Shown here piece after piece: positions 3,807-56,449 of a DNA stretch of 64,000 nt; the first letter of the stretch is position 1; each line of letters begins with the position of its first letter. Both the position numbers and the translations under genes were made by a program. The notes under the pieces are model-generated. The model was not told the DNA's origin. It was given only the letters and a program-made list of their open reading frames with translations, and searched no databases. The DNA is taken from the NCBI GenBank assembly GCA_021613535.1, contig CP075492.1:5394001-5458000 (forward strand), written 5' to 3'. This stretch comes from Adineta vaga. Lineage: Eukaryota; Animalia; Rotifera.

Positions 3807-4934
3807 ATGCACCTCGGAATGTTTCGTCAATCCATATATTTGCTTATGGTTATGTGCATTATGTCAATTGCGTTTGTTATATTAAATATAATAGTCGTTA
3901 ACAAAATTGTTTCAAATCATTTATTTTATATGTGGGATCTTATTGGTTTATCATCATTCACATCTCAAAGCTCTTATGCAGAGCATGTAACATGCTCTGC
4001 GAATGATATATTAGTCCAAGCGAACAAGTTTCAACAACTTTTCTCCCAAGATAAATTCTGGTCAGCCTGTTATAAAAATGACTACCTAACGATGCTCTAT
4101 CTTGCTGATTTGAATAAACCAAGACAGCAAAAAAAACTCTTGTTTGATATTGGAGCAAATAAAGGTTACAATATAGCTGCATGGTTATCAATGTGGAAGC
4201 CAGAAATGGGTATCAATTCGAAAACTCTGCATGAATTTCTGTCACAACTGTTAAATGCAAATCATTGTGGAGTCTGCTCAGATTGTAACGAAACGACACC
4301 AAGCAATATACAGACAAGCAGCTATCTTGATACTACGTTCGAAATTCATGCGTTTGAACCAATAGAAAGCACTTATAAAGTTCTTCGTCAAATACGTACT
4401 TGGATGAATATTTCTACTTTATACATTCATCAATTAGCAATTACTAATACTACCGGTATAGCTAATATGAGAAAATGCCCCGTCGGAGGAGAGTCATGTG
4501 GACTGATGAACGAAGACGATCCCGTATCAGAAAACGAAAAGGTCTTTCAAACTCAGACGATGACGCTTGATGACTTTGTTAAGCAAAAAAAAATAAGAAC
4601 AAAAATAGATCTACTCAAAATTGACACAGAGGGTGCTGATCCACTTGTCTTACAAGGCGCTAAGAAATTATTTTCAAAAGAACAGGTTAGAATGCTTATT
4701 TTTGAGAATCATGAAATTGGCGCATGGAAAACAACTCGTCTATTAACGGTTATAGAAACACTTAATATGCAAGGCTTTACCTGTTACATGCTTGGTAAAA
4801 CGGGTTTAGTACTCTTGACAAACTGTTGGTCTTCTGCACTTGATGTAAAACAATGGAGTAATGTCTTATGCATCCATCGACGAGAGAAACATCTCCTGCG
4901 TCTTTTAGACGCACTTCTCATTACCAGTATTTGA
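3807..4934 (+). CDS. FkbM-family (Methyltransf_21) SAM-dependent methyltransferase with N-terminal signal anchor, intronless
   Basis: SAM motif LLFDIGANKG, IHAFEP, TLDDF and IDLLKIDTEGAD. Hydrophobic N-terminal helix. First ATG at 3807. Confidence 0.88.
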   Translation: MHLGMFRQSIYLLMVMCIMSIAFVILNIIVVNKIVSNHLFYMWDLIGLSSFTSQSSYAEHVTCSANDILVQANKFQQLFSQDKFWSACYKNDYLTMLYLADLNKPRQQKKLLFDIGANKGYNIAAWLSMWKPEMGINSKTLHEFLSQLLNANHCGVCSDCNETTPSNIQTSSYLDTTFEIHAFEPIESTYKVLRQIRTWMNISTLYIHQLAITNTTGIANMRKCPVGGESCGLMNEDDPVSENEKVFQTQTMTLDDFVKQKKIRTKIDLLKIDTEGADPLVLQGAKKLFSKEQVRMLIFENHEIGAWKTTRLLTVIETLNMQGFTCYMLGKTGLVLLTNCWSSALDVKQWSNVLCIHRREKHLLRLLDALLITSI

Positions 4935-7900
4935 TTTAAGAAGTACAACGCGTGCGAAAAAGTGGTTCTAGGCTTTCCAAAATGAGTATCTTATTTTATA
5001 AGAAACCATTACTTTTGTTTCTGTTTTTGAAAAATCACTGAAAAGAGAATGTATTAGTAATATTTTATTGATCGATGAGTTGGCTGAGAATGTTATGCTT
5101 TCATTAGCCCAATTTTCAACACTGCAGTTCCTTATTACGCCTAGTACTTCTTAACATGTTAACACTTGAAGATTGAAACTGATCAGAGATCCAAAGAAGA
5201 GTATTATTGGTAGCCTGATCGTTCTACTATGAAAAAATAGAGTTGTGCATAATATTTCAAAAAACATAAAAGACTTCGTTCAATAACATCAAACTATGGA
5301 AAGCTCAGCCGATTAGATCTGGGCAAGAAAAGACTCCATGCTTTTATATTAAATTCTTCAAATTTTTTCATAGTGTCATGGATCGGGTGGATTATATTCT
5401 ATCATTGCGCAGCTTCAAAATGTTGTGTATCCATGCTAAACTATACAAAGATTTATTTTAGATGATACCGAACCCAAGAAGCTTTTGTTTTGAAGCACAG
5501 AACTGCATAGATTTCTGTCTGAAAATGTTACACCCTCAAGCTATTTACGTAGGGCACTAAAAAACGTTTTTCATCCAGTTCGTCTAAAAGTCTCAGATTG
5601 AGTTTATGTAAACTATTATAACGCTTATATGTGCTTAGGATTGTGCGCAAAATTTCAGACTTTTAAGTATTGTTCTTTCTTATTTCCTCAACTGAAAGGA
5701 GACTCATATGAAAAAAACTAGTTTGTATGTATGTGTGTTTGTGTCAGGGTCAAAGGTCACATACAAAAGAATCATTCCGAGGTGGGTATGGGTGAGGTGA
5801 TAGGTGGGAGAGAGGTGCGGGTGAAGAGCCAAAAATCAAAGTTCAAAGGTAAAAAAAATATCTTCAAAACGACGGAAAAGATTGCAAAATCAACAGTAGG
5901 GTGAGGCTGGAGTGATGGGTGGGTGTGTGAGTGGAGTGTGGGTGAAGGGTCAAAGATCAAAAACACTTTTTTTCGAAATGGTCCAAAAATTCAGAAGAAT
6001 TCGATACGCGATGGATTCAGAAGTCAAACAAACAAGTTTTTAAAATTCTAGGGTTATCCAATGACACAACCGTTTTTGATAATGAGACTTGGACCAATGA
6101 GAGTTCTTCATGGTCTAGCATTACTCACATTTGTTTCTTTGACCTTAGATTTTGGATCGATCATGTTTTTTCGTTCAAAAAATCCAGCCAATTATGGTTT
6201 TTTTGATACTTGCCTATGAACCATTATAAGGTTTTATCAGGCTAGATATTGAGTCAGTCAAATATTCTATAATGGTTTGGGTAAACGATACTATTTAATC
6301 AGAGTGTCTAGTTCGATCTGTTCATCATAATGAATTGTTCCTTTGACTGTGGTGAGGATCATAAGAAAAAAAGTTTGCATATGTGTTTGAGAATGCTGAT
6401 ATTGGTCAAGAGAATATCGTTTAAGACTAGACATAGCTCAACAAACGCATGGTTATGGTACTGTAAAGAGGTTCTGAAGGGCTATATTATGGACGTGTGG
6501 GTGTGGATTATACTGCGCACTACGAAAGCTTTTAAAGCGTACTCAAAGAAGACACAATTTATGCTGATTAATAAGAATTTAGTCGAGGGCCAAGCGAGTC
6601 AGCCTCGACGAGTGTTATTTATAGCCTATAATTTCTTTTACATCAACCACACTCCACTTTTTATATGATACATGGCAGGTAGGGTGTGTGTGGGTGTGAG
6701 TATTATATCTCTCTAACACCCACACCACAACCACACCCTAGTTTTTTAGTTTTTTTGTACAAAATACAATAGAAACTAGCTTAACAACTGAATAATTCAA
6801 TTTAGTTAAAATTGATTCGAACGAAAGCTAAACGAATTTGTGATAGGAGTATGTCTGAAGCGTATACGATGCCGTATCTATATATGTAATTGATTATTCT
6901 ATTTATCATATTAATTGGACTTAATACTTGAAATACTGAGGACCAAGAGTTTTGCACTTTACTATATATCAAGGGAAAAACATCGCTACAAAATAATTGT
7001 GTGATCTCCAAAAGTTAAGACGATTTTTTATGAAATATTGTGATAAAAGTTTTTCAATAACTCTAATACAGGTCATACCATACGGTGTTTTTTAATTCTC
7101 TAAATATTCCAATACTTGTCGAAACACCCAAAACAAATTTAGTTTTATAGCTTTTAATGAAAAACAAACACTTTCCAACATATGATGCAAGAGATATTAC
7201 TGTGTTTTCCGACAGTAGATGTTTATTATATCATTCAGATTAACTTAGGAAAATATGTTTTACTTAACGACTGATTAAGAAAAAATCCTTGTGTTCGGCC
7301 GAACTTGTTAGTATTTTGCTGAAATACAAGAGTGCAAATAGTGGTGAAACTGTCTCTTTCTAAATACATACCACACTGTTAGCCCCATACTCAGATTCGT
7401 ATCCATCTTTGCCACATCCTCGAACTTTCTTTGCTTTCTGATTTTTCTGTGAACCATCCTCACTCTGCCTAATCTATGATATAATAAAAAATAGCATAAT
7501 TTCAATGGTTATTCTTTCTCAGACAAACTTCAAGATTAGAAAACTTTGAATGCTCATACAAGTGGTACAAGGGTAGTAGTCGTTTTAAAAAAGTTTGAGG
7601 AAAATCTATCGAGCTGAATGGAAGAAAGACTATTCCCAAGATAGATCGCTTTTGAGCCTATATTATAAAATAAACTAAAATTGGCGATCATACTTTTCCA
7701 AGACATATCTCTTATTAAATAGGATAATTGTAATTCTCATCTTGAAACGTATATCTATTAAAAATCTTTTATTTCTATCGTATTTTGACGAGGTGATGTC
7801 GTAAAAATACTGTATAGAATAACTAAAGGAAAAATCTAAATCTGATAAAAAGATATTCTTGATGATTTCTTTAGATTTTCCATATCTCAGCTAAAATTCA

Positions 7901-8225: not shown

Positions 8226-10311
8226 TCAGCGATCCAGGAAACCTTTCGATCGATGATGATCAAAAATCGTTGGATAAGGTCGTTTGTGCATTTCTCCCCA
8301 TTGAGATGGGTCTGGGTAAACTGTAAGGTTCCATTTTTTTGCAAGAAGACTCATAATAGCTTGATCATGTCGATGATCACGAAAGTCAGGATAGTTACCA
8401 AAACCAAGGACATTATCATCATCTGTAATTGCTCGAGGATCTTGTGCGTAGGCCAACCATTCTGATACAAATGCCACACTGGTAAAACTTTTTTTAACTA
8501 CCATATAAGAGGCAAGATTTGACCATGTTTCAGTATATTCTGGCTTGTCAGCATTTAGAAGAATCAATGTATCTCGTTTCATCCATATTGATTCCTGAGG
8601 AGAAAATTGAAAACATGATTTTTCTGTATTCATTTATACTGTTCAAACTATTCTATTTAAATAATAATACAGAGCACAAAACTATATTATGTACGTTTTT
8701 ATAAAGAAAGATTACTTCTACACATTGTGAAGCTTTGCAGGTACGCTAATAAAGCTTGAGTAAAGAGACTTTCCTTTCCACTGATAATAAGAGTTCCGCT
8801 GAACTCGATGTAGCTATCACATTCATGAGTATCCTGCATGTATCTGATTCGTAAATAATCTAGTGTTTATTTTTTTACGATCTACTGAAATTTTACGCAA
8901 TGATAGTGGAACAACGCTGTGGTCTTTCTGAAAAATATCGACGTCGAAAATTTCACAAAAGCTTTTTGATCAAGTATGCATTGGCTCGGTTTAAATAGAT
9001 TTGGTAATTAGTTCAAGTTAAAAAGATACATAATGTTACTATAAAAAATTCATAGATATGCAACACCAGGTTGTGCGTAACTATACTAGTAAAGATAAAT
9101 CATGTAATCTTAATCTTTTTACAGCAGACGTTTTATCAAGCACTCTACAGAAAGTGTAAAACTACATCTATATGGATCTGTTCTGATGATGTTTCGATAT
9201 TTAAGCTGAACAAGTCATACACTGATGCTATTCCAAACTGCACTAAGCAACGTATCACTATTTAGAATATTCTATTGATTTTGAAGCCATCTCGGTTTTT
9301 TGAGAATCATCGCATTTTTATAATTTTTTAAAATATGCGCCATGGTTAGCTGTAAAACAACAACATGAAAACATTTTAAAGATAAATAACTGACAATGTC
9401 TTGAAAAAATTTTTCTTTTAATAAATATCATCAGTAGGGATGTGCAGTTTCAGTGAAAACAGTTCAATAGGAATTTAGATTTTTTTCTTTGTTTTGCAGG
9501 AAATTTTACAGCCTATTCGTTAAAAGTTTTAATAATAGGATTTAATTACGAATAAAACCTTCGTAAAATATTCAAGGAGATAATCCTCATACCATATTGG
9601 GCGCAAATACTTAAAAACTGAGCATAGGAAATGACTATATCAATACTCGTTGTACAAAAGAAAAGTACGAGTATCTGGACATCGCTTAAACAAAACTAGC
9701 AGTCAGATAATACCAATTATATGTAGTTTAACTCAGATCCGAAAGAAAGTCATTTTTACCTTAAAACCTGTGAGTTGGAAAACGACAATATCTTGTTTTG
9801 TAGTTAATTCTGTTAAATAAGATATATTCGCAACAACATTAACTAATGCATCGGAATACACGATAATATCTCCATCTTGTGCCAGATAAAGTTCTTGAAA
9901 GATAATATACGGCTTCCACAACCAATAACCACCACCTCGCGTTCTGTCTAGAATTTTTTTGTTGCGACCAAAAAACATTGGATTATTAGCCAAGTTCTGC
10001 ATGTTAAACATAACACATTGCTGAATCCCATATTGCAAACCTGTCAAACAATTTTTTCTTTGTGATCGTCTACAACATTTATGAGCGAAATTAATCAAAA
10101 GTGGATAGCAACGTTGCACACCTGAGTTTGGTACATGTGTTACCACCGAATGGCATGAATTGTAAGTACCAGGAGAATTTTGAAATATTATTTGAGTAGA
10201 AAAACGTTCACTAATAAATAAAATGTGTACTATGACCACAGAGCAAATAATAGAAACGGCCAAAATACACAATAAACGGACACACCATCTGATCATTCTA
10301 CGCGACAGCAT
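8226..10311 (-). CDS. Putative glycosyltransferase (GYWLWKP...RHDQ family), type II membrane, 2 exons (10311-9760, 8594-8226)
   Basis: Two ORFs join in frame via a GT-AG intron 9759-8595 (TGFK|ESIWMKRD). Motifs RGGGYWLWKPYI, IVYSDA and DHRHDQAIMSLL. TM helix follows MLSRR; an upstream ATG at 10425 is possible. Confidence 0.75.
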
Positions 10312-10768
10312 ATTACGAAGAAGACCCACTTTAATTAACAAATAGTGAAGAATTTCTTGTAATACACACAATATCCGGAACGTAGATGCGATTGAAGAAG
10401 AATTATGATATTCGTGCGTGCTCATTGAGTTTTCCTCGTCTCATACTTTTTCCTGTTATTTATACATGCAGTAGTGATCGAAATGACTCATACAACTTGG
10501 AGAAACAAACTGATCGTAATACTGAATATTTTGCAAATATCTCAGCTACTACGAATGCCCTAATTATAACTGTTTCTTCTAAAAGATATGCTTTGAAGTT
10601 CTCTACAAGATTAGTCCGTAAAATAGTTTATGAACCGCTTGCAATAGCTTTCTTGATGCATCAAGAGCAGAATGCTTTTAAATAATAAAGTGCCTCGTTA
10701 TATGGATTACTATAACTAAATAGCTCCTTTTTTTAGAGCAAATGTTGTAGAGAATTGCATGGTATAAA

Positions 10769-11536: not shown

Positions 11537-12008
11537 GGTGTATCTCTCAAAAGATACAATTAAACATGGAAAATTTTCTTCATGTTAGGATGCTTGCAGA
11601 ATGTTCAATATTACAATCAGCTTGAGGCTTTTAGCGATACAAATAATTTTAGTATAAATCAAAACTTTGATGACTTTTATTATTTTTACTATTGCAACAC
11701 TAATACGTATCTAACTGAACTAATGCTTCCATTGCAGCAACTGTTAATAACGAGCTATATTTGAGTGACAACCATAGCTCAAGAATGAAGGTGTGGGGGT
11801 ATCATCGCTACCAACTAAACATATCCGCCCTCACCCATACCTTCATCGAATGCATCTACTATATCGAAGAGAAAATGTAGTAAGTAGATATACTGATTGC
11901 TATTTCTTTATTGTGACAGGTGATGCATCTGCTTTCAGCATTTCTTCTATTTTGACAAGTTTCTTCTAGGTCAAGATATTTATGTGTATTATCATATATT
12001 TTATTTAA

Positions 12009-13374
12009 ATGAGCCACTCTCGTCGTAAAATCCGACGTTTATTCTTATTTGCTCGCAAACATTACGCTTATATGATATTTATTGGAATATTTGTTCGTGT
12101 TCTTTTTATTTTTCACAAAGAAATCATATATTATCTCTATATACAAACGCTAGATGTGCAACCATATGAAAAATCAATCACTATATGGAGTACAGATTTT
12201 CATACAGGGTATATTCGTACCACCGGGAAAAACTTAACTACAATGTGCTTGTTTTTTTTAATTTTTCAGTCCTATCCAAGATCTTAAAAACATGCTCATA
12301 CCTTTGGGTGTCAAATTTTTCGATAAAAGCCTTTCATATGGTTGCTCAAGAACGGGAACATGTTATTCTCCTCTACGTATACTAACACAAAAAAATGGGA
12401 TGAACCCATCAAAAGAAATTTCGTCTAAATTTTATCAATTTTATAAGAATCAAATTGAAATGAATGTTGTTGATGCATTCATTTGCTTTCATCCAGCAGG
12501 AATGTGTGAATTATATATGCCATTTAATCGAAGTATTATTATCATTGCATCAACACGCTATGAACTAGCTAGATTTGACCCACATCAATGGATGCAATTG
12601 AATGAAAATCTGAAAAGAATTTCACAAGATCCAAAAAATGTCATCGCTGCTAATAATTTATACGATGCCGAATATATACATTATTTTACTGGTATCGATG
12701 TAACTCTCTTAACGAGTCTTTGCAATTATACAAATGTTCAATATCATCGAACCAAAAAAGAATTTTTACTTGCTCCTATTCATGAACCGAAGTTTGATAT
12801 ATTATTGAGAAAAATGCTTGATAAATCGCTACAAGAACACGAAGAAAAACATATACGAATAGTACCACTTCGAGAAATATATCGTGATTATACATATTCT
12901 GATTTATCTCATCATCCTGCGATTATTCATGTTCCTTATCAAGTTTCAGTCATGAGTTTGTTCGAACAATATCGAATGAATATTCCGCTTCTATTTCCAT
13001 CACTTGATCTTTTAACTCGATGGCATGTTGAATATGGTGCAGTCAATGAAAAAACTTGGGATCAGGTTCTCTATGGCGTTAAGCCACATCGCTCACATAT
13101 TGATGGGATATTAACAAATGTGCCAGATCCAAATAATGACCGCAATGAATCCTCGATCAGATATTGGTTGAAATTCTCAGATTTTTATCAATGGCCACAT
13201 ATTATATATTTTGAGTCAATTGATGATCTGATTCAAAAACTGAGCTCGACAGATTTCGATATGATTAGTAAGAAAATGAAGAAATATAATGAGAAAGTTA
13301 GAAGAAATTTACTAAAAAAGTGGAAAAACATACTTCAAAAGATAAAACGATATTCAAGAAAATACACTAAGTGA
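12009..13374 (+). CDS. Uncharacterised type II membrane glycosyltransferase-like protein, 2 exons (12009-12208, 12270-13374)
   Basis: A 61-bp GT-AG intron joins WSTDFHTG-PIQDLK in frame. Basic tail then TM helix. C-terminal HPAIIHVPYQVSVMSLFEQYRMNIPLLFPS resembles a GT-B nucleotide-sugar-binding segment. Confidence 0.75.
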
Positions 13375-20869: not shown

Positions 20870-21507
20870 TGTTACGATCTGTGTATGCATACACTAAGAT
20901 CATATCTATCTATTTTCTTTCATTCTGTCTTTACTTTTCCGTATTCATTCTCTTTCGTGTCTATGTACTAGTCGGTTGTTTATTCTATTCGAACTTCCAT
21001 ATAAATAAACAAAGGACAGATCATTAACAGTGGCGACCCCGCAGTAAATTTATAAACAATCGATTCTTTTTTAATTTACATTTAATTATGACAGTGCATA
21101 CACGTAATCAAAGTGAATCAAATAATGATGCTGATCCTCAACCTATTGCACAAGTTACAAATGAATCTAATCCAAATCTATTATCATTAACAAATACAAA
21201 TAATGATGATAAAACAGCTACAGCTGATGGATGTTCCGCAACAGAACGTGATGAAAAACCAACATTATTAGAAGTACTTCGCCATGATGTGAAATTATTT
21301 AATGGTCAAGATGATGCTCGTCAATGGTTTAGACATATTCATTCAAAATTTTCGGAATTTAATTTAACACTTGATGAACGATTGGAAATCATTCCTTATT
21401 TTTTCGAAGATGATGTTTTCATTTGGTATACGTTGAATCAAGACAAAATTCAATCATATGCTCATTTATGTCAATTATTTGCTCATGAATATTTCAATCT
21501 CGAATAA
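20870..21507 (+). mobile_element. Ty3/Gypsy remnant: 160-bp 5' LTR, PBS and truncated gag (21088-21507)
   Basis: LTR 20870-21029 with inverted ends TGTTACGATCTGT / ACAGATCATTAACA and an AATAAA. PBS TGGCGACCCC at 21031. ORF has gag-like FNGQDDARQWF...IWY...SY..L...F. No pol or 3' LTR. Confidence 0.75.
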
Positions 21508-33597: not shown

Positions 33598-34592
33598 TGA
33601 AATGTTATAATGTAAACCGTTTCTACGCCGAAAATGCTGATCTGCTTAGTTACTACTATTGTTACTACTATATATTTCGGTATTTTTAGAAACGATTATG
33701 ATTTCATTTCCGAGAATAATTATTATCAATCATGAGGTGTCATCGCGACATTCTATCCGTAGCGATGATCGATCTGTTTTCTTAACCATTAATATGATCC
33801 ATTCTGTAGTGAGGTTTCATTCAATTAAAATAACTCATTCTATCCAATCATTATTTTCATGATAACAGCTTTACATCTGCCATGCGCCAACGCATAGTAT
33901 CATGTACAAGTTAGAATACAGAAATAAAGATTTCATTTGCTCTTCTGCTGATCTTCAAAACATCAATATTAACCCAATAATGGATCACGATCCAACAAAC
34001 CAATTAGCTATCGTCTGATGTGTCGATTTTGACACATGATATCTTTTATCACCCATCGATCACTGGTGGTCAATATGATTATCTTATGAGAATGGATGCT
34101 GATTCTGTATTTCTCCGATGTGACTAAAAAGGATCTTTTATATATACAGACAAGCAAAACTAGATTATGTTTATCGTGCTGAATACTGGGAACCAATCAC
34201 ACCAATGAAGCCTGTTCTGAAACATTTCTTTACGATATATCCGAAGTCTCTAGCTGCATTTACAATAATTTCTTTATAGTTCGATTAAAATGGTATCACG
34301 AATCAAACGAGTTCAAACTTCGTCAATGAGTTAGTTCGCGATGATTTAATGATTCTGTGAATACATTGGCGATGGATGTGCTCATGCAGCTATGTTAAAA
34401 ATTGATAATCAGGTCAAAGTAAAACGCATCACTGATATTTCCTATGGACATAATTATCATGTAATGACGCGTTGGGGAGTACTGAAATTTGTGAAAGTGG
34501 AGCAGTTTGAGGTGGAAATAAAAAAATCTTGTGAACAATTGATAGTAACTTCGAGACACTAGTGGTATACTCACTCAAATACCGATTCCATA
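33598..34592 (+). pseudogene. GT15 mannosyltransferase, copy 1, many indels (pseudogene or consensus error)
   Basis: Aligns to 55451-56449 with numerous scattered 1-4 nt indels. Confidence 0.7.
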
Positions 34593-35054
34593 ACAAAACG
34601 AAAATACATGTCCTGTCACAGTTGTTTGTCAAAAGTAGCAAGTGGTCATGGCCACGAGAGTGAATGTATGCAAATGCAAATTACTATCAAGATACGTATC
34701 GATGGTATACGGTTATGAAAATCGGTTAAAATACAACTCTAAATATGATTAAATAGATAACCATAATTATAATTAAGGGCTACTGCGAGTAAAACTGTAA
34801 TACATATTCTAAAATTATTCATCTAGTGTGACGATTTCCGATTGAAAGAGGCAGTAGCGCTGATGGAGCTATCCTTTCGTTTATTTCTTCATGCTATAAA
34901 GCACATCGATCTCACATGAAACAGTCACTTATATACCCTTCCTCAGGAGAAAAGGATAAAGGATTTTAGGGCAGAATACACAATAAGAACAAATATCAGG
35001 ATGTAACGCTTTCCACTGATTTCGTCACACTTATCCAAGTAGAGATATATTGTT

Positions 35055-38717: not shown

Positions 38718-40408
38718 TAGAAACTGAGAAATTGCAGTGACAGTTATTAGTAAGTCAGGGATGCCAATTGCATACCAAATCAAATATGTTCTTTGTACAA
38801 AAATAACAGTTTTTTCATTCCACTTTTTACATCGATTTATATTTTGTTTGAAACAACTAGAATGTGCCACAAGACACAGTATAAAATGAACTACAATCTA
38901 CAAAGGAAAGCTTATTTATTTGTGTAATTTCTGCTGTTAGAAAAAGAAAAATCATGTGCAATCAATTTTTGACGCTCCCAAAATATAATTTTTCTTATTT
39001 CATCTTTATATCACCTAATGTGCTTTTCCGAAGAGAAACGAAATACCGGAGAATATGCAGTGTAAAATGTATTTGAGTTATGTGCTTTCAGTTTTCAAAC
39101 AGCAAAATTTCATGACACCAATGCGTAACATTGCGAGAAATGATTTTTCGGCAAGGATGAGCAATTTCTTTCTTCTTACTTGAACAGATTGTTCCCCATA
39201 AATAATAGTTTTTTGCACTGCATCTTTTGATGTATATTTTTTGACATGCATATTAATTGCCGAAGCGATGAAATATGAAAAGGAATATGTCGTTGACATA
39301 GAAAAATATTCAGTGAAGTAGACTTGTGATCGATGGTGTTACATATGAAGGAAAAGAATTGTAAAGGTTCAAATGTGTGCTTCATGATGAAGTAGAAACA
39401 GGAGAGAATGTTCATATGTAACCATCTCGAACTGGAAGAACTGTGCAAATGATGTATAAATTACTAGAATGAGATGATTACTCTTCCCACGATTTTACTT
39501 CTAGAATCTACTTTTGTTAAAGTATAAAAGAAAGACATGGTCTCTGAATATGTAATATTCAAGGTGATCAGATCGATAGAAATTATTACATATGAAGAAG
39601 ATAAACTATGTAAGAGTTCAAATGTGCTTCATGAAAACGAAATTGAAACAAGGAGAGAAACCAGAATGTAGTTTTATCTTTCTGCTTTCTAGAATACGAT
39701 CAGTTTCACTAAAGACATATTCACTTGCGGTTGATGAAGCTTGAATAGAAAAAGCGTGGAGAAACTTAACGTAAGAATCGTGAAAATATCGCTGAGTGCT
39801 TCTTCCATCACATTAATATATTTTCACCTTCACCAAAATTGCTATTCATTTTCATGTATTCCATTAGTTTTACAGGACTCTAGTCGAAAGTCGGTCGCAC
39901 ACAATTTCACTTTCGTTTGAAAGTAGCAAGCACACAAATAAAGTAAGCTTTACTTTGCAGATCGTAGTTCTTTCATGTTCTAGCTTGTAGTATATCTTTA
40001 TTTGCTTTGAAGAAAATATAAAAGCGACGTAGAAGTGGAATAGAATAGAAATAGAACATTTTTTTGTCAAGAACAGATGACAGAAGAATGCTTATAAAGA
40101 ATTTCCTAAAACCAATGATTCAACTTAATATGAATTAAAATCTAGTGCTATACATTTCAGAGAGCATGAAGCTCATAAGAAGAAAAAAAAAGAAGAAGAC
40201 TAGTTACTCGCAAGCACTCATGATGCCTTCTAGTTTTTCATCGATAGATAGTGCGAGTAAGTGAGTAGAAAGACGCTTTCTTAACACACTGATTCACATT
40301 AATGTCTTCAAGTAATTTGAAGGCAAAGGATAGTTAGCTTTGGAACAGGTAGTGGAAATGACCAGAAAAATAACAACATTTAAAAAGCGATGCTAAATAA
40401 AACTAGGA

Positions 40409-41092
40409 CAACGTAGGTAAAATTAGCACCGTATTCGAGTATTTTTTGTTAGGATTCGCCTGTAAACTTGTGCTGGTCTTCGAAAAGGTTGTGTTGGATA
40501 CAGAATTGAATTCTGCTTTCGAATGATGCCAATTTTAATAGGGGTCCACCGTCCAAAAACTGAAGTTTTCGACGAAAAAACCGGTGTTTTCACCCATTTT
40601 TTTGGACTTGAAACTTTGTATTTCTTGCCCGGATTCGCTTGAGCACTTGTGCTGTGTCTAAGAATGGATGTGTTGGATTTAGAATTTAATTCTCTATCAA
40701 ATGATGTAGTTTTTGAAGAGGGTCACCGAGGGAAAAAATCATCACACCCACACACCCACACCCTCGCCTCCGGTAATGCCGCCTAAGTCCTACATCATTT
40801 GATAGAGAGTTAAATTCTGAATCGAACACATCCATTCTTAGACTCAGCACAAGTTCTCAAGCGAATCCGGGCAAGAAATACAAAAGTTTCAAGTCCAAAA
40901 AATGGGTGAAAACACCGGTTTTTCGTCGAAAACTTCAGTTTTTGGACGGTGACCCCTATTAAAATTGGCACCATTCGAAAGAGAATTCAATTCTGCATCT
41001 AACACAACCTTTTAGAAGACCAGCACAAGTTTACAGGCGAATCCTGACAAAAAATACTCGAATGTGGTGCTAACTTTTCTTACCTGCTGTTG
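40409..41092. repeat. ~680-bp fold-back element, copy 1
   Basis: Same as 62767-63447. Confidence 0.85.
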
Positions 41093-42690
41093 AACTGTAC
41101 TCTTTACGAAATAAATGTACTGAGACCTAATAGAATAATTTAATTTTGTTATGTTTGATGCGTTATGACTTTTAGAAAAAAAATAATCCGGTCTTCAAAG
41201 GGTTAAAGAATTCCGTTATATAAATAATCCTAGAAAAAAAGTGCTCTAAAAACGTAAAGGAAAGTATTCATTCATAAATAAGAAAATCCTGTCTGTATTA
41301 TTCTAATTAGTTAGTTAGTTCATCCATCATAATATACTGTGTCGATAGCTTAGAGTTCTTAACAATCAATAAACATATTTTATTCCAATTATTCATATGT
41401 TATTCCCAAATCATTTCATATGAAATAAATGTGTATATATATATTGTATGCGCATATAAGTCAGCCAGTTTTGTTGATTTAGAAAGAATATCTTAAAGAA
41501 AGAAATGTTTGGCTAACACAATATATACAAAAAAAATTTCCGTTATGCACAGTCCGATTTTATATTTCATCGATTCCGTCAATATCGCTTTTAACGTATA
41601 GTATAGTATAATGATAGAATTATTGCTAGTGTATATTTGCTCCAAATATATCTATCGGAAATGAATTTCTTATATCTCGAACGGGTAGAGTTAATACATG
41701 TAAATGGCCATAATGCATTATATTATAGAAACATAAAAGATAACCATGTTATTTGGACGTATTTTTTGTGGCCGTCTCATGTTCGTATAGACAATAATAA
41801 TGATTATTCATGTCCCGAAACCCAAATACTAATATTCCAGCTTTTCACAATCATTTATCCCAAATTACAAAGATTCACGATTTAATGAACACCCATCCAT
41901 AAGATGATCTTGTTGAATAAATGTTCACGTCATCTTATATTCTTCTATATATAAGAATAATATAATGATAAATTCATGATTTCACCAAGATCCATCCCAT
42001 AAAATATCAGAAATAGAAATTATACAATATCCCATATTTATACGTGCGTTTGTGATCAGTGAATTACAACGTATGAAAAAGAAAGAATCGCAAGAGTTCA
42101 AATATATGTCTGCTGATGAATGGAAGGAGAAAAAGTGGAAGATGGAGAATGTGCATATGTAATCACTACTTACGTGAGTGACGTATTGAGACGAACGAAA
42201 AAAGAAAGTGATTGGATCATACAAGTGAGAGAGAAAAAAAACGAAGCGAAAAGTAAACAAAACTTGAATTGAATCAGAATGAATGTAACTAAGCAATAAT
42301 GTTATATAACACTAAAAAAAAGATCAGAATACGTGCATAATATGTATTAGATAACAATTTAACAGAAAGCTTTATAATTATTCTCAGACTCATAAGAACT
42401 GAAACGTTAGTTTAAGCAAATGTCGTTGCCTATCAACTAGCTGTACTCATGTTACGAAAATCAACAGTTTTAATTGAAGACTCGAATTTTGTATAGGTTT
42501 TACACATCTATTTATCCTTTCTTGTCATGATTTTTAAGAAAGGAAAACATAATAATTAACAATTTTCATAACATTATTAAACAGTCTGTGTCGATCATAG
42601 TATTAACTTTTGTCGCTCAAGAGAGGAGATTTAAGAATTCAAATGTATTAGAAAGGCACACCACTATCAATCAGATTCTGAGGAAATAGG

Positions 42691-43328
42691 TGTTACGATC
42701 TGTGTATGCATACACTAAGATCATATCTATCTATTTTCTTTCATTCTGTCTTTACTTTTCCGTATTCATTCTCTTTCGTGTCTATGTACTAGTCGGTTGT
42801 TTATTCTATTCGAACTTCCATATAAATAAACAAAGGACAGATCATTAACAGTGGCGACCCCGCAGTAAATTTATAAACAATCGATTCTTTTTTAATTTAC
42901 ATTTAATTATGACAGTGCATACACGTAATCAAAGTGAATCAAATAATGATGCTGATCCTCAACCTATTGCACAAGTTACAAATGAATCTAATCCAAATCT
43001 ATTATCATTAACAAATACAAATAATGATGATAAAACAGCTACAGCTGATGGATGTTCCGCAACAGAACGTGATGAAAAACCAACATTATTAGAAGTACTT
43101 CGCCATGATGTGAAATTATTTAATGGTCAAGATGATGCTCGTCAATGGTTTAGACATATTCATTCAAAATTTTCGGAATTTAATTTAACACTTGATGAAC
43201 GATTGGAAATCATTCCTTATTTTTTCGAAGATGATGTTTTCATTTGGTATACGTTGAATCAAGACAAAATTCAATCATATGCTCATTTATGTCAATTATT
43301 TGCTCATGAATATTTCAATCTCGAATAA
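42691..43328 (+). mobile_element. Ty3/Gypsy LTR-PBS-gag remnant, copy 2
   Basis: Same sequence as 20870-21507. Confidence 0.75.
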
Positions 43329-44265
43329 ACTTCTTGTCCTGATGTCAACGCTAATATCAAACAATCAAACCAATCTTTTTTATTACGTCCACCTGTTGTT
43401 GTTAATGAATCTATATATGATGATTTAATAAATCTTTTAGGTGATAAAGCAGTAGCAACTGCTGATGATCATGATACACATGCTTAAATTCTTGTATACG
43501 AAATCCACGAAATCTTCGACCAGTTTTCCACAAGAAGATAATATTCCAGTTCATTGTTAATAGTACGGCTAATTCGGCACCTTCAACATCAAGACCAAAA
43601 AAAAGTCGATATGAGTAATTCCAATAGCGGACAAATAAGTGCCAATAGGACCACATGCTACCTTTCGTATTTTGTGATGATTTTTATACTATGCCTTCTT
43701 GAAGGATGCATCCATAGTTGCGATATCACTTGCAACAGGACTATCTTTACCCTGAAATTTAAATATTCAATCAAATCTTTTAATCTCTTTTTTAGCACTG
43801 TCATGTTTGTGTATAAGAAAAGATACCGAATGACATCGCAATTTTGATCTTGAGACCATATATGTTCAATAGTAACAATCTATATAATATAACAGCATAG
43901 AATGATAAAAGCTTCTAAAATTATTCTTTCTTCAATATATCGACTCTGATGAATAACAAAGTCACGACACTGTTAGTCTCAATGAGCTTAATGACTAACT
44001 TTGACAAGTGTTTCCAATCCTTATATACTACACTGTGTGTTAGAAGTACACATATTTGTCCATTTTCTTGAGTGTCTGTCTTTAGATATTGACATGAATG
44101 AAAAAAAAGAGACATCTATATATCGATAGAGATAACATTATGATGATTTTTGTCTATATTTCTTATTGATACATAAGATAAAATCGACCTATTGTCTAGA
44201 CATCGGTCATTTAAAAATGTTGTCCTTATCATCTCTCGTTCTTCACACGTTTGAACTTATTATCA

Positions 44266-45768
44266 ATGACGATAACAAAACATGTACATCGACGAAAGAT
44301 TTGTCTACTTATTATTTCTACTCTCTTATTTTTCACTACTATACTAGTATTTTGGTTTTTGTTTGATCATTCACCTCGAATTCAATATCAATTTACTTTT
44401 GTATCGAAAGCAACATCTCAAAGACGATCATGGCAAGTACAGGATTGGGTTCAACGATACAATATCACTCATCTATTTGATTGGACTTGGCATAGAACTG
44501 GTGATTATAATCGATGTCACATACCACCAAATTCTATTTCGAAATTAATCCCACAAAAATTGAATTCAACAATTGTCGTTCATGATGTTGTTAGTTATTT
44601 TCGTTCTCATTCTGATGAAGGATGTATTGTCGATAATGCACCACATCAACCAAATCCCGTTCCTCATCCAATACCTCGTGCTCGTAACTGGTCCGATACG
44701 TGTGCATCGATGAATATCGATCGTCACTGGATCTTATGTTATCTACCACAATCAGAAATTGGAAAATATTTACCAACGACGACTCATCATGTAGTAGTGG
44801 CTACATTTAATGCATATGTAGACAAAGGTCATTGTAATATTGAGGTACCAGGTACAGTATTTACAGAGCATGCTACTTTTCATCCTCAAGGATGGGTCAA
44901 TGCACCGTGTAGTGTTGATCCAATTACTCGTCTTCCAATGGTTAAACCAAAAAATCGATATATTGAATTAATTGATTCAATTGGAGTTTATTTACATGCA
45001 CCTGGACATTTTGGACCTCAACAATTACCACGTTTATTACGTTTACTTGCCGTAGCTCCAACAACAACCAAAGTTCTCGTAGCCAAAGGTGGTGTTGCTG
45101 ATCTATTGATGGATGTTCTCATTGAGCGAGATGTTGTTACACGTGATCGAATCGTTCTATTTGATAAAAAGAATCGTGATGATTATTATGCTAATATTGT
45201 TTATCGTAGCGAAAGTTGGCCATATTTATGGAATCAAAGTTATGCACATCGACTCCATGATCGAACAGATATGCAACTTGCTCATCGTGTTCTCGTTGGT
45301 GATAATAATCATCAACAATCAATTGATAAAAAAGATCATGTTATCCTTATAAAACGAAAAGATGGTTATGATCGATCATTGATCGAACATTCCGATGTTG
45401 CTGCATTTATGATATCTGCACTGGAAAAATCAAATCTTTCATCTAATCTACATTTTAAAGTTTTTACTGCTCAAGGACATATGCGTGATCATATTGCTTT
45501 ATTTCATCGAGCACGTATCATTGTGGGTCCTCATGGAGCTGGTATGATGAATATTTTATGGGCATCACCAAAAACATACGTCGTCGAAATTGGCTATAGT
45601 ACCGGTATGACATTTCCTCAAATGTATGCTGAAATGAGTCTTCATTTGGATCAAAACTATTGGGTTTGTAAAGGACACGGAGCTTATGGTGCTCCTATTC
45701 ATATTGATATGAACGATTTTATGTATATTTTTAATCAAATTCTTCAGGAAATAAAAACGTATTCTTAG
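44266..45768 (+). CDS. Glycosyltransferase family 61 (DUF563), type II membrane, intronless, ~500 aa
   Basis: Family motif ARIIVGPHGAGMMNILWA..T.VVEI, plus PGHF and ILIKR. N-terminal HRRK followed by a TM helix. Confidence 0.88.
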   Translation: MTITKHVHRRKICLLIISTLLFFTTILVFWFLFDHSPRIQYQFTFVSKATSQRRSWQVQDWVQRYNITHLFDWTWHRTGDYNRCHIPPNSISKLIPQKLNSTIVVHDVVSYFRSHSDEGCIVDNAPHQPNPVPHPIPRARNWSDTCASMNIDRHWILCYLPQSEIGKYLPTTTHHVVVATFNAYVDKGHCNIEVPGTVFTEHATFHPQGWVNAPCSVDPITRLPMVKPKNRYIELIDSIGVYLHAPGHFGPQQLPRLLRLLAVAPTTTKVLVAKGGVADLLMDVLIERDVVTRDRIVLFDKKNRDDYYANIVYRSESWPYLWNQSYAHRLHDRTDMQLAHRVLVGDNNHQQSIDKKDHVILIKRKDGYDRSLIEHSDVAAFMISALEKSNLSSNLHFKVFTAQGHMRDHIALFHRARIIVGPHGAGMMNILWASPKTYVVEIGYSTGMTFPQMYAEMSLHLDQNYWVCKGHGAYGAPIHIDMNDFMYIFNQILQEIKTYS

Positions 45769-45890
45769 CAAGATAAAAAGAACGATTGTGTCGCTCTATT
45801 GCCATTGGTTCGTTGATAAGATACGATTGAGTTTGATCAATTTTTCTTTCGTGTCTCATCTCATTCTCATAAATAATAGCTATACTAAAT

Positions 45891-48140
45891 ATGAATAATT
45901 CACAGAGTAGTAATAACGAAATGGATGTCGATAAAATCGGTGTTGTTGATGAAGAAGGTGAACAACAATCAGCCAAGTAAAGATTTTATTTTATACTTAT
46001 ACTTTAATTATTTTTTAATATTAATTCATAGAGGTCAACTAACTGGTCCAAGTTCCTTATTTATTTGTCTTCATTTTCTGATGATGACTATAATAAAACC
46101 TTTAGTTACTAAAACTATTCGTCTTTATCTTGACGACGTGTTCGAAATCATTTTTTCAAATGATCGTATTGTAAATAATCCAATGGATCAACTACAAGAA
46201 TTTGCTAATAAATTCAATCTCAACTTTTATATTTACATCATTCAAGAAGATGAAAGAGGATTTCACGAAATCATCTCTTCAGCTGTCCATGAAACTAATA
46301 ATCATGTTCGTGCATTTCTTGTATTCGATCAACGTCATCAACAGTTTTATGTATTCTCGATCAAGGATCCAAATATTGAACATGAAGTCATGTTTCGTAT
46401 GGATGATATGAATAGTATGCAATTATTTCAAGAGTTTGTCTCTAATCAATACCCTGACAGTACAGTAAATGTCGTCCAATCATCAGAATGTAAATTAAAT
46501 GCATCAAATTTATGTAATTTATTACTTCAAAATGTTCAATCTCTTATTTCTTGTGTTGGATCACAACTTGATCATTTCAATAAGTTTTCCTTCGCTTCCT
46601 CCGGTGAGATATATAATTGTATTATCAAAGTGATTGAATAGTACTTTTGTTTTTCTTTATTAGCATATCAACTTGCTGAAAATGACTTTACCTCTCTAGA
46701 AACGATGAACAATGCTTTAGACAAACAATTGAACTTATTATTAAGACTATCAGAATTAACAGCAGAAACCTTGAAAATAAATCGTATAACATCTATCTCA
46801 ACAGATATTACTGAAGCAACTTCTATTGTCAGAGATACATGTAAATAATCAATTATTTCTTCGCAGTCGATTTCTTAATTTTTTTTATTTATATAGCAAT
46901 AACGAATCACGATGAAAATATTCTAACTAATAATCCAGTCGACATCAGTCCAGACATACCATTAAATGGTCAACTGTCAATAACGACAGACAATGGTGAG
47001 CAAACAATACAATTACCCAAAGTACAATTATTGAATCAACCAGCACGAGTTCGTCGTCATCGTTATTTAGTAGAATTACGCGATGGTAATTGTTCCGGTA
47101 TACCATTTCAATTCACGGTAAATTCATCTAAATTAATTAGATTATTAATCATAATTCAATTATATTCTAGCTTCCAAAAGAGATCAACAATTATAAGCGA
47201 GACTTTTATCTTGGTGCGCATGTTACAACCTACGATGGAAAAGAACATGATCAGAAAATACCGGTGTACACGGATATTTCAATTAAAGAGAATTATAATC
47301 TAAAAACGAATGATCTCGATTGTTTTGAAACTTCGAATGATCATCAAGATAAAAATGAAACATTTGATCGGAAAACGAAAGGTGTCTTTTCAAAAATTAT
47401 TTTTTCTGACCAAGAAAGTCTTCAGAAAAGGTAAAAAATATTATTTTTAAAAGAACATCTATATATTTATAGACATAGTTGGACTTTCAAGACAGTTAAT
47501 TTATGTCAAGACAACACAATTACGAAAACATTGATCAAAGTTAAGAAACTCAAATGGTGTCGATTCAAATTTGCAATTTATATCAAATCATCTATTGGTC
47601 ATTTTCAACAAATTTCTCCACCAGTCTATTCAGATTTGTGCCAAGAAAGTAAATGATAAGACATCATTTTCTTCTTGATCTTATATCCATGCTTTTCTTT
47701 TTAATTCAAGCTTCTAATGGTCACCCAATAGAAACGGATACGATTATTCCAGATAAACTCTGCGAAAATGGTGGACAAATGATATTCATTGCAATTGATG
47801 AAAATTTGAATAAAGATGGTATAGAATTCTTCAAGTTTTGAATACTATCTATACATGCATTCTTTATTTCAGACGTATCTGTATCTTGTAATAATAAAGT
47901 TATCAACAAAAATAAATTCCAAATATGTGGAAAAATTCTATCGTTTGAATCCCCGGTGCATAAGCAAGGAGAAGATAATCTTACGATCGAAGTTCGTAAT
48001 TTAACCGGTGATTTTCTTGTTTCTCATCAATTGTTATATCATCAACATGGTATAGTCTCCTTTTTCTATATATTTGAACTTTGTACTATATATTTCTAGG
48101 TGATCATCCTGATCCATGCGGTGTATACAATGATGACTAA
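45891..48140 (+). CDS. Divergent Rel-homology-domain (NF-kB/NFAT-like) + IPT/TIG protein with OTU-like N-terminus, 9 exons, ~605 aa
   Basis: Manual splicing gives a stop-free frame. RHD-like VQLLNQPARVRRHRYLVE and LKWCRFKFAIY..GHFQQISPPVYSD. IPT-like PDKLCENGGQMIFIAIDENLNKDD and ILSFESP..LLY. The exon structure is more certain than the domain assignment. Confidence 0.7.
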
Positions 48141-48799: not shown

Positions 48800-50748
48800 A
48801 TGTCAATCCTACCCAGACTTATTCGTCTACGAACGAAATACATTCGTTTAGAAGTCATTGCCTCGATCATATTAATCAGTCTTTTTATTAATATTTTTTC
48901 CATTCATCAATTATTTCAATGTTCATCATTAAATGAATTAAAGCCATTGAAAATACATTCGAATATAAATCCATTAAGTACTATAGAACGATCGAAAAAG
49001 GCGCTTGAAAATTTAAAAGTATTATTGAATAGTGTCGTATCTTCAACTGATCAACCATGGATTTGGACGCCTTCAGCACAATATCCATCTGTACCATATC
49101 AACCAACATTATTATCAAATCAAAAAATTCCCAAAGCAATTAATACGAAATCAGCTGTACCACACGTCGTTCAAGATGAAATTAATCGTGTCTGTCAACG
49201 ATTGACTAAAACAAATAGTACAAGTGGACAAATTTGGTGTAAATTATTTACAAAATGTTATGCTGATACATTAGCAACAACTACAACTTTATTAGATGAC
49301 AATACAACTTATATAATAACCGGTGATATCGATTTAATGTGGTTACGTGATAGCAGGTAAGATTAGGAAGAGAAACAAATAATAAATGAAAAATTTCCTT
49401 TTATTCTCTAGCGCTCAAGTTCATCAATATATGACATTATCACATGATAAAGATATTCAACGTATTATAGAAGGTTTGATTCGTCGTCAAACACAATTTA
49501 TATTTACTAATCCATATGCAAGTTCATTTCGTTTAACCCTTTACGGCCGTGTGTTGCCAAAAAGCAACAATTTTGCCGTAGGGGGGTACGGCATTTTTTA
49601 AAAAGTCGACCGTGAAAAATTGATCCCTATAACTAAACAACAAAGAATATATAGAAAGATAACTTTTTGCTTGTTGTTTTCTGGTAGCCGGCCGTAAAGG
49701 GTTAACTCTTCGTCCAAATCCACCATCGGACGATTCTCTTGAACCAGTTCATATTCTCAAAGGTCGAAATATTCATGTTGCCATGCATAATTATGAATTA
49801 GATAGTTTATGTTATCATTTACGTTTAAGTTATACTTGGTGGAAACAAACACATCGTACAGATGTTTTTGATCATCAATGGTTACTAGCAGTGTCAATGA
49901 TTATTCAAATCATGATTATTGAACAACATCATTCAGAAATTTCACCATATCATTATACAGAATTAGGCAATAATTATCAAGGTTCACGCGTTTCATATAC
50001 AGGAATGACATGGAGTGCATTTCGTCCGAGTGATGATCAGACAAAATTTGGTTATTTGATTCCAAGTAATATGATGACTACCGTTGTTTTAAAACAACTC
50101 AAAGAAATGATACAAAGTTTATATCCTGATCAAATTGAACTTTTACAACAAATATATCAATTACAAGTCGATATTTATTCAGGTATTCATACGTATGGTG
50201 TTGTTCAACATGCAAAATATGGTCAAATCTATGCTTATGAAACTGATGGATTTTCTTCACCTCTTCTTATCGATGATGCCAATGTACCATCACTTCTTTC
50301 TGCAGCATATCTTGGTTTTAAAACACCCTACGATCCTGAAGATCAAATATTAGCAGCAACACAATCATTTGTTCTATCGAAAGAGAATCCCTTCTTTTTT
50401 TCTGGTGAATATGCTTCAGGAATCGGTAGTCAACATACTCAATCGCAATATGTTTGGCCTATGGCTATTATAATGGAAGGCTTTGCAAATCAATCACAAG
50501 TAAATCTCGATAGTGTTTGGAAAAGATTAGAAGCAAGTCATGCTGGTACATTTGCTATGCATGAAAGTTTCAATATTAACAATCCACAACAATTTAGTCG
50601 TACATGGTAGATTCTTTTTTTTTTTCTTTTAAATTTTCTTTCCAAAACAACATCATTTTCTAGGTTTGCATGGGTGAATTCTTTATTTGCCGAATTAGTT
50701 TTAGTACATCTGGATAAATTGGAGAATTGGTTGCAATATCGTCATTAG
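48800..50748 (+). CDS. GH125 mannosidase-like gene, copy 2 (same MITE at 49537-49701)
   Basis: ORF translations match copy 1. Confidence 0.88.
49537..49701. mobile_element. 165-bp piggyBac-type MITE, copy 2
   Basis: Same as 27721-27885, with TTAA TSD. Confidence 0.93.
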
Positions 50749-55450: not shown

Positions 55451-56449
55451 ATGAAATGTTATAATGTAACCGTTTCTACGCCGAAAATGCTGATCTGCTT
55501 AGTTACTACTATTGTTACTACTATATATTTCGGTATTTTTAGAAACGATTATGATTTCATTTCCGAGAATAATTATTATCAACCGCGAGGTGTCATCGCG
55601 ACACTTATCCGTAGCGATGATCGATCTGTTTTCTTAACCATTAATATGATCCATTCTGTAGTGAGGTTTCATTCAATTAAAAATAACTCATTCTATCCAA
55701 TCATTATTTTTCATGATAACAGCTTTACATCTGCCATGCGCCAACGCATAGTATCATGTACAGTTAGGAATAATACAGAAATAAAGATTTCATTTGCTCT
55801 TGCCGATCTTCAAACATCAATACAACCCAATAATGGATCACGATCCAACAAACCAATTAGCTATCGTCTGATGTGTCGATTTTGGACACATGATATCTTT
55901 TATCACCCATCGATCACTGGTGGTCAATATGATTATCTTATGAGAATGGATGCTGATTCGTATTTCTCCGATGTGACTAAAAAGGATCTTTTTATATATA
56001 CAGACAAGCAAAAACTAGATTATGTTTATCGTGCTGAATACTGGGAACCAATCACACCAATGAAGCCTGTTCTGAAACATTTTCTTTACGATATATCCGA
56101 AGTCTCTAGCTGCATTTACAATAATTTCTTTATAGTTCGATTAAAATGGTATCACGAATCAAAACGAGTTCAAACTTTCGTCAATGAGTTAGTTCGCGAT
56201 GATTTAATGATTCGTGAATACATTGGCGATGGATGTGCTCATGCAGCTATGTTAAAAATTGATAATCAGGTCAAAGTAAAACGCATCACTGATATTTCCT
56301 ATGGACATAATTATCATGTAATGACGCGTTGGGGAGTACTGAAATTTGTGAAAGTGGAGCAGTTTGAGGTGGAAATAAAAAAATCTTGTGAACAATTGAT
56401 AGTACTTCGAGACACTAGTGGTATACTCACTCAAATACCGATTCCATAA
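55451..56449 (+). CDS. GT15 (KRE2/Mnt1-like) alpha-1,2-mannosyltransferase, intronless, 332 aa
   Basis: Motifs YPIIIFHD, SYRLMCRFW, YDYLMRMDADS, IYNNFFI and YIGDG (canonical RWGDA). N-terminal TM helix. Confidence 0.85.
   Translation: MKCYNVTVSTPKMLICLVTTIVTTIYFGIFRNDYDFISENNYYQPRGVIATLIRSDDRSVFLTINMIHSVVRFHSIKNNSFYPIIIFHDNSFTSAMRQRIVSCTVRNNTEIKISFALADLQTSIQPNNGSRSNKPISYRLMCRFWTHDIFYHPSITGGQYDYLMRMDADSYFSDVTKKDLFIYTDKQKLDYVYRAEYWEPITPMKPVLKHFLYDISEVSSCIYNNFFIVRLKWYHESKRVQTFVNELVRDDLMIREYIGDGCAHAAMLKIDNQVKVKRITDISYGHNYHVMTRWGVLKFVKVEQFEVEIKKSCEQLIVLRDTSGILTQIPIP

Follow-up and report, generated by a model that had tools for sequence, protein, structure and literature searches.

We analysed a stretch of 64,000 nucleotides on chromosome 3 (C3) of Adineta vaga, a bdelloid rotifer (positions 5,394,001-5,458,000; hereafter the window), in which genes for several unrelated enzymes of glycan metabolism lie close together. 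The assembly has 6 contigs and 100.8 Mb, and the locus is interstitial, at 5.4 of 20.35 Mb on chromosome 3. G+C content is ~32% throughout the window. Inside 52.6 kb there are 6 non-homologous enzyme genes, encoding an FkbM-family methyltransferase, two glycosyltransferases (GTs) named here GT-A and GT-B after the folds predicted for their families, a GT61 enzyme, a glycoside hydrolase (GH) of family GH125, and a GT15-like protein. The genes occupy both strands and transposable elements (TEs) lie between them. An earlier note on this DNA described the genes as a unit resembling a biosynthetic gene cluster; one mark by which such clusters are recognized, at least three adjacent non-homologous enzyme genes, is present in the window. 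The enzyme genes, with the single neighbour that is not an enzyme gene, are located as follows (window coordinates).

3804-4934, plus strand: FkbM-family methyltransferase, single-exon open reading frame (ORF) of 376 amino acids, PF05050
10515-8075, minus strand: GT-A-fold gene ("GYWLWKP"), whole extent, two exons, from spliced RNA-type contigs
9759-10515, minus strand: GT-A-fold gene, exon 1, ATG at 10425, from an RNA-type contig joint
8075-8593, minus strand: GT-A-fold gene, exon 2, stop codon 8226-8228, from an RNA-type contig joint
11920-13374, plus strand: GT-B-fold gene ("WSTDFH"), whole extent, two exons, from spliced RNA-type contigs
11920-12207, plus strand: GT-B-fold gene, exon 1, signal anchor, ATG near 12009, from an RNA-type contig joint
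12269-13374, plus strand: GT-B-fold gene, exon 2 to the stop codon, from an RNA-type contig joint
22432-23945, plus strand: GT61 copy 1, frame broken by a 1-bp deletion in an A5 run, compared with copy 2
44251-45768, plus strand: GT61 copy 2, intact, 505 amino acids, signal anchor, PF04577
45891-48140, plus strand: RHD-like, putative multi-exon gene between GT61 and GH125, first ORF 45925-46641, from its A. ricciae counterpart
26984-28794, plus strand: GH125 copy 1, with an insertion, PF06824
48800-50610, plus strand: GH125 copy 2, exons 48800-49360 and 49783-50610, PF06824
33597-34600 (approximate bounds), plus strand: GT15-like copy 1, compared with copy 2
55451-56449, plus strand: GT15-like copy 2, intact, 332 amino acids, signal anchor, family profile

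Three of the enzymes are assigned directly by Pfam, in agreement with what had been read from the sequence before. The FkbM gene matches PF05050 (Methyltransf_21) with 55.1 bits against a curated cut-off of 22.7 (E 1.3e-14), and its signal anchor is formed by hydrophobic residues 14-32. Paralogues of this gene lie elsewhere in A. vaga at C3:18.68 Mb (62%) and C1:15.02 Mb. GT61 copy 2 matches PF04577 with 50.6 bits against a cut-off of 27 (E 3e-13); no significant match was found between the GT61 sequence and solved structures. Its orthologues are at 72% in A. ricciae and 63% in A. steineri. GH125 gives 294 bits to PF06824 (E 1.9e-87), above the cut-off, and matches the characterized exo-alpha-1,6-mannosidase structures 3qt3 (E 3.7e-75) and 3qpf (E 1.3e-70), of CpGH125 and SpGH125. 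By sequence it is a clear member of that family. Orthologues of GH125 are present in all sampled bdelloids, at 84% in A. ricciae, 80% in A. steineri, 71-77% in Rotaria and 49% in Didymodactylos, and the next best named matches are from Paenibacillus and Cohnella at 44-46% identity. This distribution fits an old bacterial acquisition that would have gained its signal anchor afterwards. Between GT61 and GH125 lies a gene noted before as regulator-like, here termed RHD-like; its first ORF is 41% identical to a 620-amino-acid gene of A. ricciae at the same position.

The genes of the GYWLWKP and WSTDFH types had also been called glycosyltransferases, and for both this assignment has held: each is a transcribed gene of two exons, with a glycosyltransferase fold in the model of a family member. 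The GT-A joint from 9759 to 8593 is seen in RNA-type contigs of 3 runs, which come from 2 studies, and delimits a 1165-nt intron (8594-9758) with GT..AG ends on the minus strand. The GT-B joint from 12207 to 12269, across a 61-nt GT..AG intron, is present in RNA-type contigs of 2 runs from one study. We conclude that both genes are transcribed and spliced, since the joints occur in RNA-type contigs and a DNA run spans both pairs of splice sites without any. The RNA-type contigs cover one 5.9-kb stretch, and they show expression, not its level. The two neighbouring genes thus contrast in intron size, 1165 nt in GT-A versus 61 nt in GT-B; a repeated element touches 9650-9670, inside the GT-A intron, in the DNA run.

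The spliced GT-A model encodes 344 amino acids. At E<=1e-3 its family comprises 1,749 cluster representatives. One family member, P0335, can be aligned over its C-terminal half, HRHDQ motif included, with exon 2. The evidence for the fold comes from a model of full-length P0335, which is 42% identical, not from the window's own spliced protein; this model (predicted local distance difference test score, pLDDT, 84.8) shows a Rossmann-like GT-A fold and is matched by Foldseek with probability 1.0 to retaining enzymes of GT8, GT6 and GT34, with E from 1.9e-6. No Pfam or NCBIfam match was obtained for the GT-A gene (Pfam to E 10) or for ten relatives. The GT-B protein is ~430 amino acids long. The model of its A. 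ricciae homologue P0080, which is 71% identical, reaches pLDDT 93.5, has the two Rossmann domains of a GT-B fold, and matches GT1 UGTs and the GT4 enzyme BshA with template-modelling (TM) scores of 0.5-0.6. Pfam assigned no family to the GT-B gene even at E 10, a sequence search of the PDB with GT-A and GT-B returned nothing, and a search of a protein atlas with the unnamed GT genes gave sub-threshold GT-A-type leads only.

The sixth enzyme had been assigned to GT15, and this assignment stands for the family profile and not for the gene by itself. The ORF at 55451-56449 has no Pfam match of its own even at E 10, and so falls short of the PF01793 cut-off. A profile of 31 members of its family reaches the fungal enzymes Ktr4 (7boo, 6.9e-9; 5a07, 3.6e-7) and Kre2 (1s4n, 2.8e-5), 16 of the 31 members match PF01793, and the signature YRxMCRFW is invariant in the family. 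The family is bdelloid-wide, with 77 relatives detected; outside the bdelloids there is none at detectable similarity, and a scan of viral contigs found no relatives. The gene is thus homologous to GT15 and too diverged for its specificity to be called. A further gene, a supposed GT31-like relic, did not survive: PF01762, which has 38 matches genome-wide, has 0 in the window, and tblastx of seven A. vaga GT31 genes against the window gave nothing below E 0.05.

In all 6 enzymes a short, often basic N-terminal tail leads into a hydrophobic segment (Kyte-Doolittle 19-residue maxima 1.9-3.0), as expected from the tail and transmembrane signal anchor described before. Judging from these anchors and the predicted folds, each intact enzyme is most likely a type II membrane enzyme of the Golgi or the endoplasmic reticulum that acts on glycans.

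Much of the window consists of a tandem array. The intervals 19359-41202 and 41203-63555 are copies of one unit of ~22 kb, and a third, partial copy extends from 63556 past the end of the window to +73114 (signed positions continue the window coordinates beyond its ends), for a total of about 2.4 units.

19359-41202, plus strand: tandem unit copy 1, ~21.8 kb, with gag-like ORF, GT61, RHD-like gene, GH125, piggyBac, GT15-like gene and TE debris
41203-63555, plus strand: tandem unit copy 2, ~22.4 kb, from self-comparison
63556-64000, plus strand: start of tandem copy 3, continuing outside the window
29239-30790, minus strand: piggyBac-type transposase copy 1, PF13843
51057-52609, minus strand: piggyBac-type transposase copy 2, in three ORF pieces, PF13843
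16057-20464, no strand assigned: inverted duplicate, 97% identical to -41.3 to -36.9 kb upstream of the window, from self-BLAST of the extended region

Every unit carries the gag-like ORF, GT61, the multi-exon RHD-like gene and GH125; piggyBac, the GT15-like gene and TE debris are added only in the two full units. Copy 3, which has an intact GT61 and an uninterrupted GH125, ends at the very point occupied by piggyBac in copies 1 and 2, and homology both to copy 3 and to A. ricciae stops at 29118. Downstream of copy 3 are ordinary genes, encoding a Methyltransf_32 protein, GGTase-beta, a GMC oxidoreductase and an Orai-like protein. Because of the tandem copies, GT61, GH125 and the GT15-like gene are each present two or three times; the count of distinct families is unchanged by this. 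The gag-like ORF, of 139 amino acids, heads each unit upstream of GT61 (21088-21507, 42909-43328, and from +65245 onwards) and has no Pfam match. The GH125 coding exon is interrupted by ~160-170 bp of inserted sequence in copy 1 (27726-27885) and in copy 2 (49542-49701). The insertion is missing from copy 3, which reads through as one 351-codon ORF.

An array of this kind might arise in assembly, from haplotypes laid in tandem or from unpolished long reads, in which case there would be fewer real copies. Some details of copy 1 point in this direction. GT61 copy 1 differs from copy 2 only in the loss of one A from an A5 run, without any substitution, so that its frame break may be a sequencing error, and GT15-like copy 1 differs from copy 2 by 18 indels of one to four bases, many of them homopolymer deletions, against 6 substitutions, which leaves it either a pseudogene or unpolished sequence. 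The same bias extends over 30000-35000 and 40000-41200 of copy 1, where the differences from copy 2 are mostly 1-bp indels, many homopolymeric, with few substitutions. This pattern suggests unpolished long-read sequence in these parts, and the "broken" state of the copy 1 genes is doubtful for that reason. In the gene core, by contrast, the three copies are pairwise distinct and their differences are dominated by substitutions (29, 43 and 54 mismatches versus 8, 3 and 8 indels). Three distinct versions exceed the two alleles of a diploid, and a duplication must therefore be real; the insertion shared by copies 1 and 2 and not by copy 3 points the same way. We therefore regard an artefact as highly improbable; it would in any event touch only copy number and pseudogene calls, not the co-location of the families.

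The duplications reach beyond the window, and so do the glycan-related genes. The GT15-like segment recurs in inverted orientation at -36.1 to -32.7 kb, with 94% identity, and the intact GT15-like gene that this copy holds, 35 kb upstream of the window, has 95% amino acid identity to copy 2. In A. ricciae the GT15-like orthologue (locus L006) lies beside a 910-amino-acid gene, a proteasome subunit gene, a seven-transmembrane gene and a GH5 gene, an order that matches -53 to -34 kb of A. vaga. This collinearity indicates that the upstream gene is ancestral and that the copies in the array are recent additions in A. vaga. A GT61 gene near the GT15-like gene of A. steineri was considered as a counterpart of the window GT61 and proved to be unrelated to it. 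Other upstream genes of interest are the following.

-54 kb: GH5, placed by conserved position only (A. ricciae synteny)
C3:5349155-5350125 (-44845 to -43875), minus strand: GT-like gene of two exons
C3:5362650-5365930 (-31351 to -28070): SDR/C-methyltransferase/GT2 fusion, frame of 1,094 codons, ~1,077 amino acids from the first ATG, signal anchor
C3:5382281-5383642 (-11719 to -10358): frame of 454 codons with a signal anchor, between transposase remnants and GT25
-8.3 to -3.9 kb: GT25, from a domain scan

The fusion combines an NAD-dependent epimerase/dehydratase, the zinc-binding and C-terminal domains of a sugar C-methyltransferase, and a GT2-like domain. Pfam gave no match for one A. vaga exon at the GH5 position, none for the GT-like gene at -44 kb, and no meaningful one for the 454-codon frame. 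On C2, one paralogue of the -44 kb gene has a GT61 gene at a distance of 9 kb.

How unusual is such a concentration of families? In an earlier assembly of A. vaga, 623 GH and 412 GT genes were counted (PMC4498783). Uniform placement of 520-1,035 GT/GH genes over 100.8 Mb leads one to expect a span like the 52.6 kb covered by the earlier note, with five distinct GT/GH families, 0.01-2.4 times genome-wide, and one like the extended 127 kb (-54 to +73 kb), with nine families, 2e-5 to 0.07 times. The high local density of glycan enzymes that the earlier note had pointed to is thus borne out against uniform placement; the 52.6-kb span alone is not compelling. Horizontal gene transfer (HGT) candidates make up 2,679 of 32,378 A. 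vaga genes and are enriched for carbohydrate metabolism, unevenly distributed with hotspots, and found in dynamic regions (PMC8494291). A uniform model is too kind for this reason.

Density of unrelated families is also the first argument for a functional, selected glycan cluster, in which the type II enzymes, together with the upstream fusion, GT25 and GH5, would act in one rotifer-specific pathway, possibly for a methylated, mannose-containing glycan, and in which linkage would be favoured by co-regulation or co-inheritance. The signal anchors on all members and the expression of at least two of them are consistent with such a pathway, and selection for dosage could lie behind the amplification of the unit. 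The link between GT61 and GH125 is, moreover, kept in three Adineta species: A. ricciae (L017) and A. steineri (L019) each have a single run of GT61, the 620-amino-acid gene, GH125, Methyltransf_32 and Prenyltrans, in the same order as in A. vaga copy 3 and the flank downstream of it. The block so conserved includes genes unrelated to glycans, and for this reason we read it as ordinary microsynteny. The linkage that had been expected for the whole set in related genomes fails; only Adineta species share any of it, and what they share is GT61, the RHD-like gene and GH125, followed by unrelated genes. At three GH125 loci of Rotaria no GT61 was found within 10 kb, the neighbours being NDK, LRR and DUF1349 genes. 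The gene directly upstream of GT61 in A. steineri encodes a signal peptidase, whose A. vaga orthologues map to another chromosome, C6. The three closest GT-B homologues in A. ricciae (68-71%) are elsewhere, beside GT90 and peptidase M28 genes or beside Piwi and MFS genes, with no other family of the cluster within 10 kb. At two of these loci (L012 and L013) the homologue directly follows a GT90 gene and precedes an unannotated 312-amino-acid gene, so that GT families are paired there as well, in a context different from that in A. vaga.

The genome of A. vaga itself gives a similar picture. Among 72 paralogous loci of seven families outside the focal region, 0 have another of the families within 60 kb, so that the paralogues never cluster together elsewhere. 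The homoeologous chromosome 6 (C6) showed no counterpart cluster; the homoeologous region could not be anchored there because the flanking GGTase-beta gene has no C6 copy; of the window genes, only GT-B has close paralogues there. The recent arrival of the GT15-like gene by duplication, the use of both strands and the TEs that separate the genes also speak against a selected cluster, which we think unlikely.

A second alternative is that the genes are the remnant of a foreign glycosylation island, in which GT-A, FkbM, GT25, the fusion and the -44 kb gene arrived together from a giant virus or from an alga or other protist, and were later given introns and anchors and scrambled by TEs. The GT-A family is indeed common in viral sequence, with at least 545 stretches in IMG/VR contigs, including two metagenome-assembled genomes of giant viruses and contigs >400 kb, and the only named taxon among its relatives in a cluster look-up is the alga Closterium. 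Neighbours within 10 kb of 79 viral GT-A genes include weak homologues of the -44 kb gene at 6 loci, of FkbM at 2, and of the fusion and GT25 at 1 each. In the six viral contigs the relatives of the -44 kb gene lie 1-2 kb from genes of the GYWLWKP type, and in one contig a 28%-identical relative of the fusion enzyme is beside the GT-A gene. The scans of viral contigs with GT61 and FkbM used single-protein queries and are insensitive. These viral neighbourhoods may be taken as a lead towards a contribution from giant viruses or algae, and they are no evidence of co-transfer. Identities to the viral genes are just 25-44%, no viral locus has more than one extra family, and the pairing of the -44 kb gene with GT-A seen in viral contigs is not repeated among the A. 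vaga paralogues, which are not adjacent elsewhere. The nearest relatives also differ by gene, where a single transfer unit would call for one donor: GH125 points to Bacillota, the GT15-like gene is without viral relatives, and the GT-B family, which is large in bdelloids, is shared with the annelids Owenia and Capitella (44-49%) and one stramenopile. The arrival of a single island is therefore very unlikely. The earlier suggestion of partly horizontal acquisition is upheld for GH125, with Paenibacillus and Cohnella as its nearest outside relatives, and in some measure for GT-A, abundant as it is in contigs of giant-virus type; it does not extend to a single donor lineage.

We favour the view, with a probability of about 0.6, that the window, in a TE-rich part of chromosome 3 prone to rearrangement, holds a real and unusually dense neighbourhood of glycan enzymes which is a recently assembled composite and not a conserved or co-inherited biosynthetic cluster. 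One part of the composite would be the block of GT61, the RHD-like gene and GH125, as old as Adineta, which appears to have been amplified in A. vaga to about 2.4 units of ~22 kb in tandem. The full units would each have picked up piggyBac, TE debris and a second-hand copy of the GT15-like gene, whose ancestral locus is presumed to be that 35 kb upstream, beside the proteasome subunit gene. The other part would be the neighbouring TE-rich stretch, where the FkbM, GT-A and GT-B genes sit as single copies beside the array, the GT-A gene from a family frequent among giant viruses and algae, the GT-B gene from one shared with annelids. Since recent duplications and mobile elements brought about this arrangement, and since the set is not common to related rotifers, a single biosynthetic pathway is not supported. 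The comparison to a biosynthetic gene cluster in the earlier note is thus accurate for the adjacency and density of unrelated enzymes, and it breaks down for the linkage of the set and for the co-occurrence of paralogues elsewhere. The proposed product, a trimmed, O-methylated, mannose-rich glycan, was read from the family names alone and would be a candidate on those terms.

Three points weigh against a composite of this kind. Nine GT/GH families and FkbM within ~127 kb are denser than uniform placement gives, and duplication cannot explain why families that are not homologous lie together. The GT61-GH125 pair is kept adjacent across the genus Adineta. Finally, both A. ricciae contigs end ~12-18 kb from the side that faces the cluster, so that intermediate genes could hide on unassembled sequence. 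A bolder interpretation would make the whole neighbourhood of ~130 kb a working glycan island, with the fusion, GT25, GH5 and the enzymes of the window as its parts, seeded in part by giant-virus or algal genes and producing a glycan with methylated or branched sugars, with the tandem amplification as an adaptation of dosage. We consider this quite unlikely; if true, it would mean a glycan that animals are not known to make.

To our knowledge, no other animal studied equals bdelloid rotifers in the number of foreign genes or of carbohydrate-active enzymes. A literature search for rotifer glycomics found no paper. The locus offers a testable set of proteins in this respect, namely a membrane-anchored alpha-mannosidase of bacterial type, a Golgi-type FkbM methyltransferase, and two uncharacterized GT families, one of which is common to giant viruses. 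It also shows how a neighbourhood of this kind can originate in A. vaga, where segmental duplication and TEs were at work around an older pair of genes, and it cautions against taking co-location in this genome for a pathway. If its genes were found to be co-regulated, the locus would count among the rare cases of a glycan gene cluster in an animal.

Several known systems resemble the locus in part. At the level of single enzymes, the GT15-like protein resembles the fungal Kre2/Ktr alpha-1,2-mannosyltransferases in the motif Y-R-x-M-C-R-F-W and in later acidic and histidine motifs of the Ktr4 alignment, and it differs from them in having RMD(A/D)D where the fungal enzymes have RVEP(D/K). GH125 is similar to the bacterial exo-alpha-1,6-mannosidases (E 4e-75 to structures); unlike them it is membrane-anchored and, in two of the three copies, carries an inserted element. 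The region as a whole recalls the HGT- and TE-rich dynamic regions and the interstitial HGT hotspots of bdelloid genomes (Simion et al. 2021, PMC8494291), in which carbohydrate genes of foreign type lie among TEs and rearrangements; most of those genes lack conserved synteny on the homoeologous chromosome, and C6 showed no counterpart of the cluster here. It differs in being interstitial, not subtelomeric, in lying on neither chromosome 1 nor chromosome 4, where that paper marks visible hotspots, and in a content that is almost purely glycan enzymes and not all foreign. The clusters of nonribosomal peptide and polyketide synthetases (NRPS/PKS) in bdelloids (Nowell et al. 2024, PMC11258130) are likewise made of biosynthetic genes of non-metazoan type that were domesticated, duplicated in one species compared with another, and found in regions difficult to assemble. 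Those clusters, however, are single megasynth(et)ase units with demonstrated coordinated induction, whereas the genes described here are separate and unrelated. Finally, bacterial O-antigen and capsule loci and the glycosylation clusters of giant viruses also combine several GT families with an FkbM-type methyltransferase and enzymes that modify NDP-sugars, and homologues of some of these parts are found beside GT-A in viral contigs. In contrast to these loci, the genes of the A. vaga neighbourhood are each equipped with a eukaryotic signal anchor, and spliceosomal introns occur in some of them; their orientations are mixed, TEs lie between them, no single donor is indicated, and they are not conserved as a unit.

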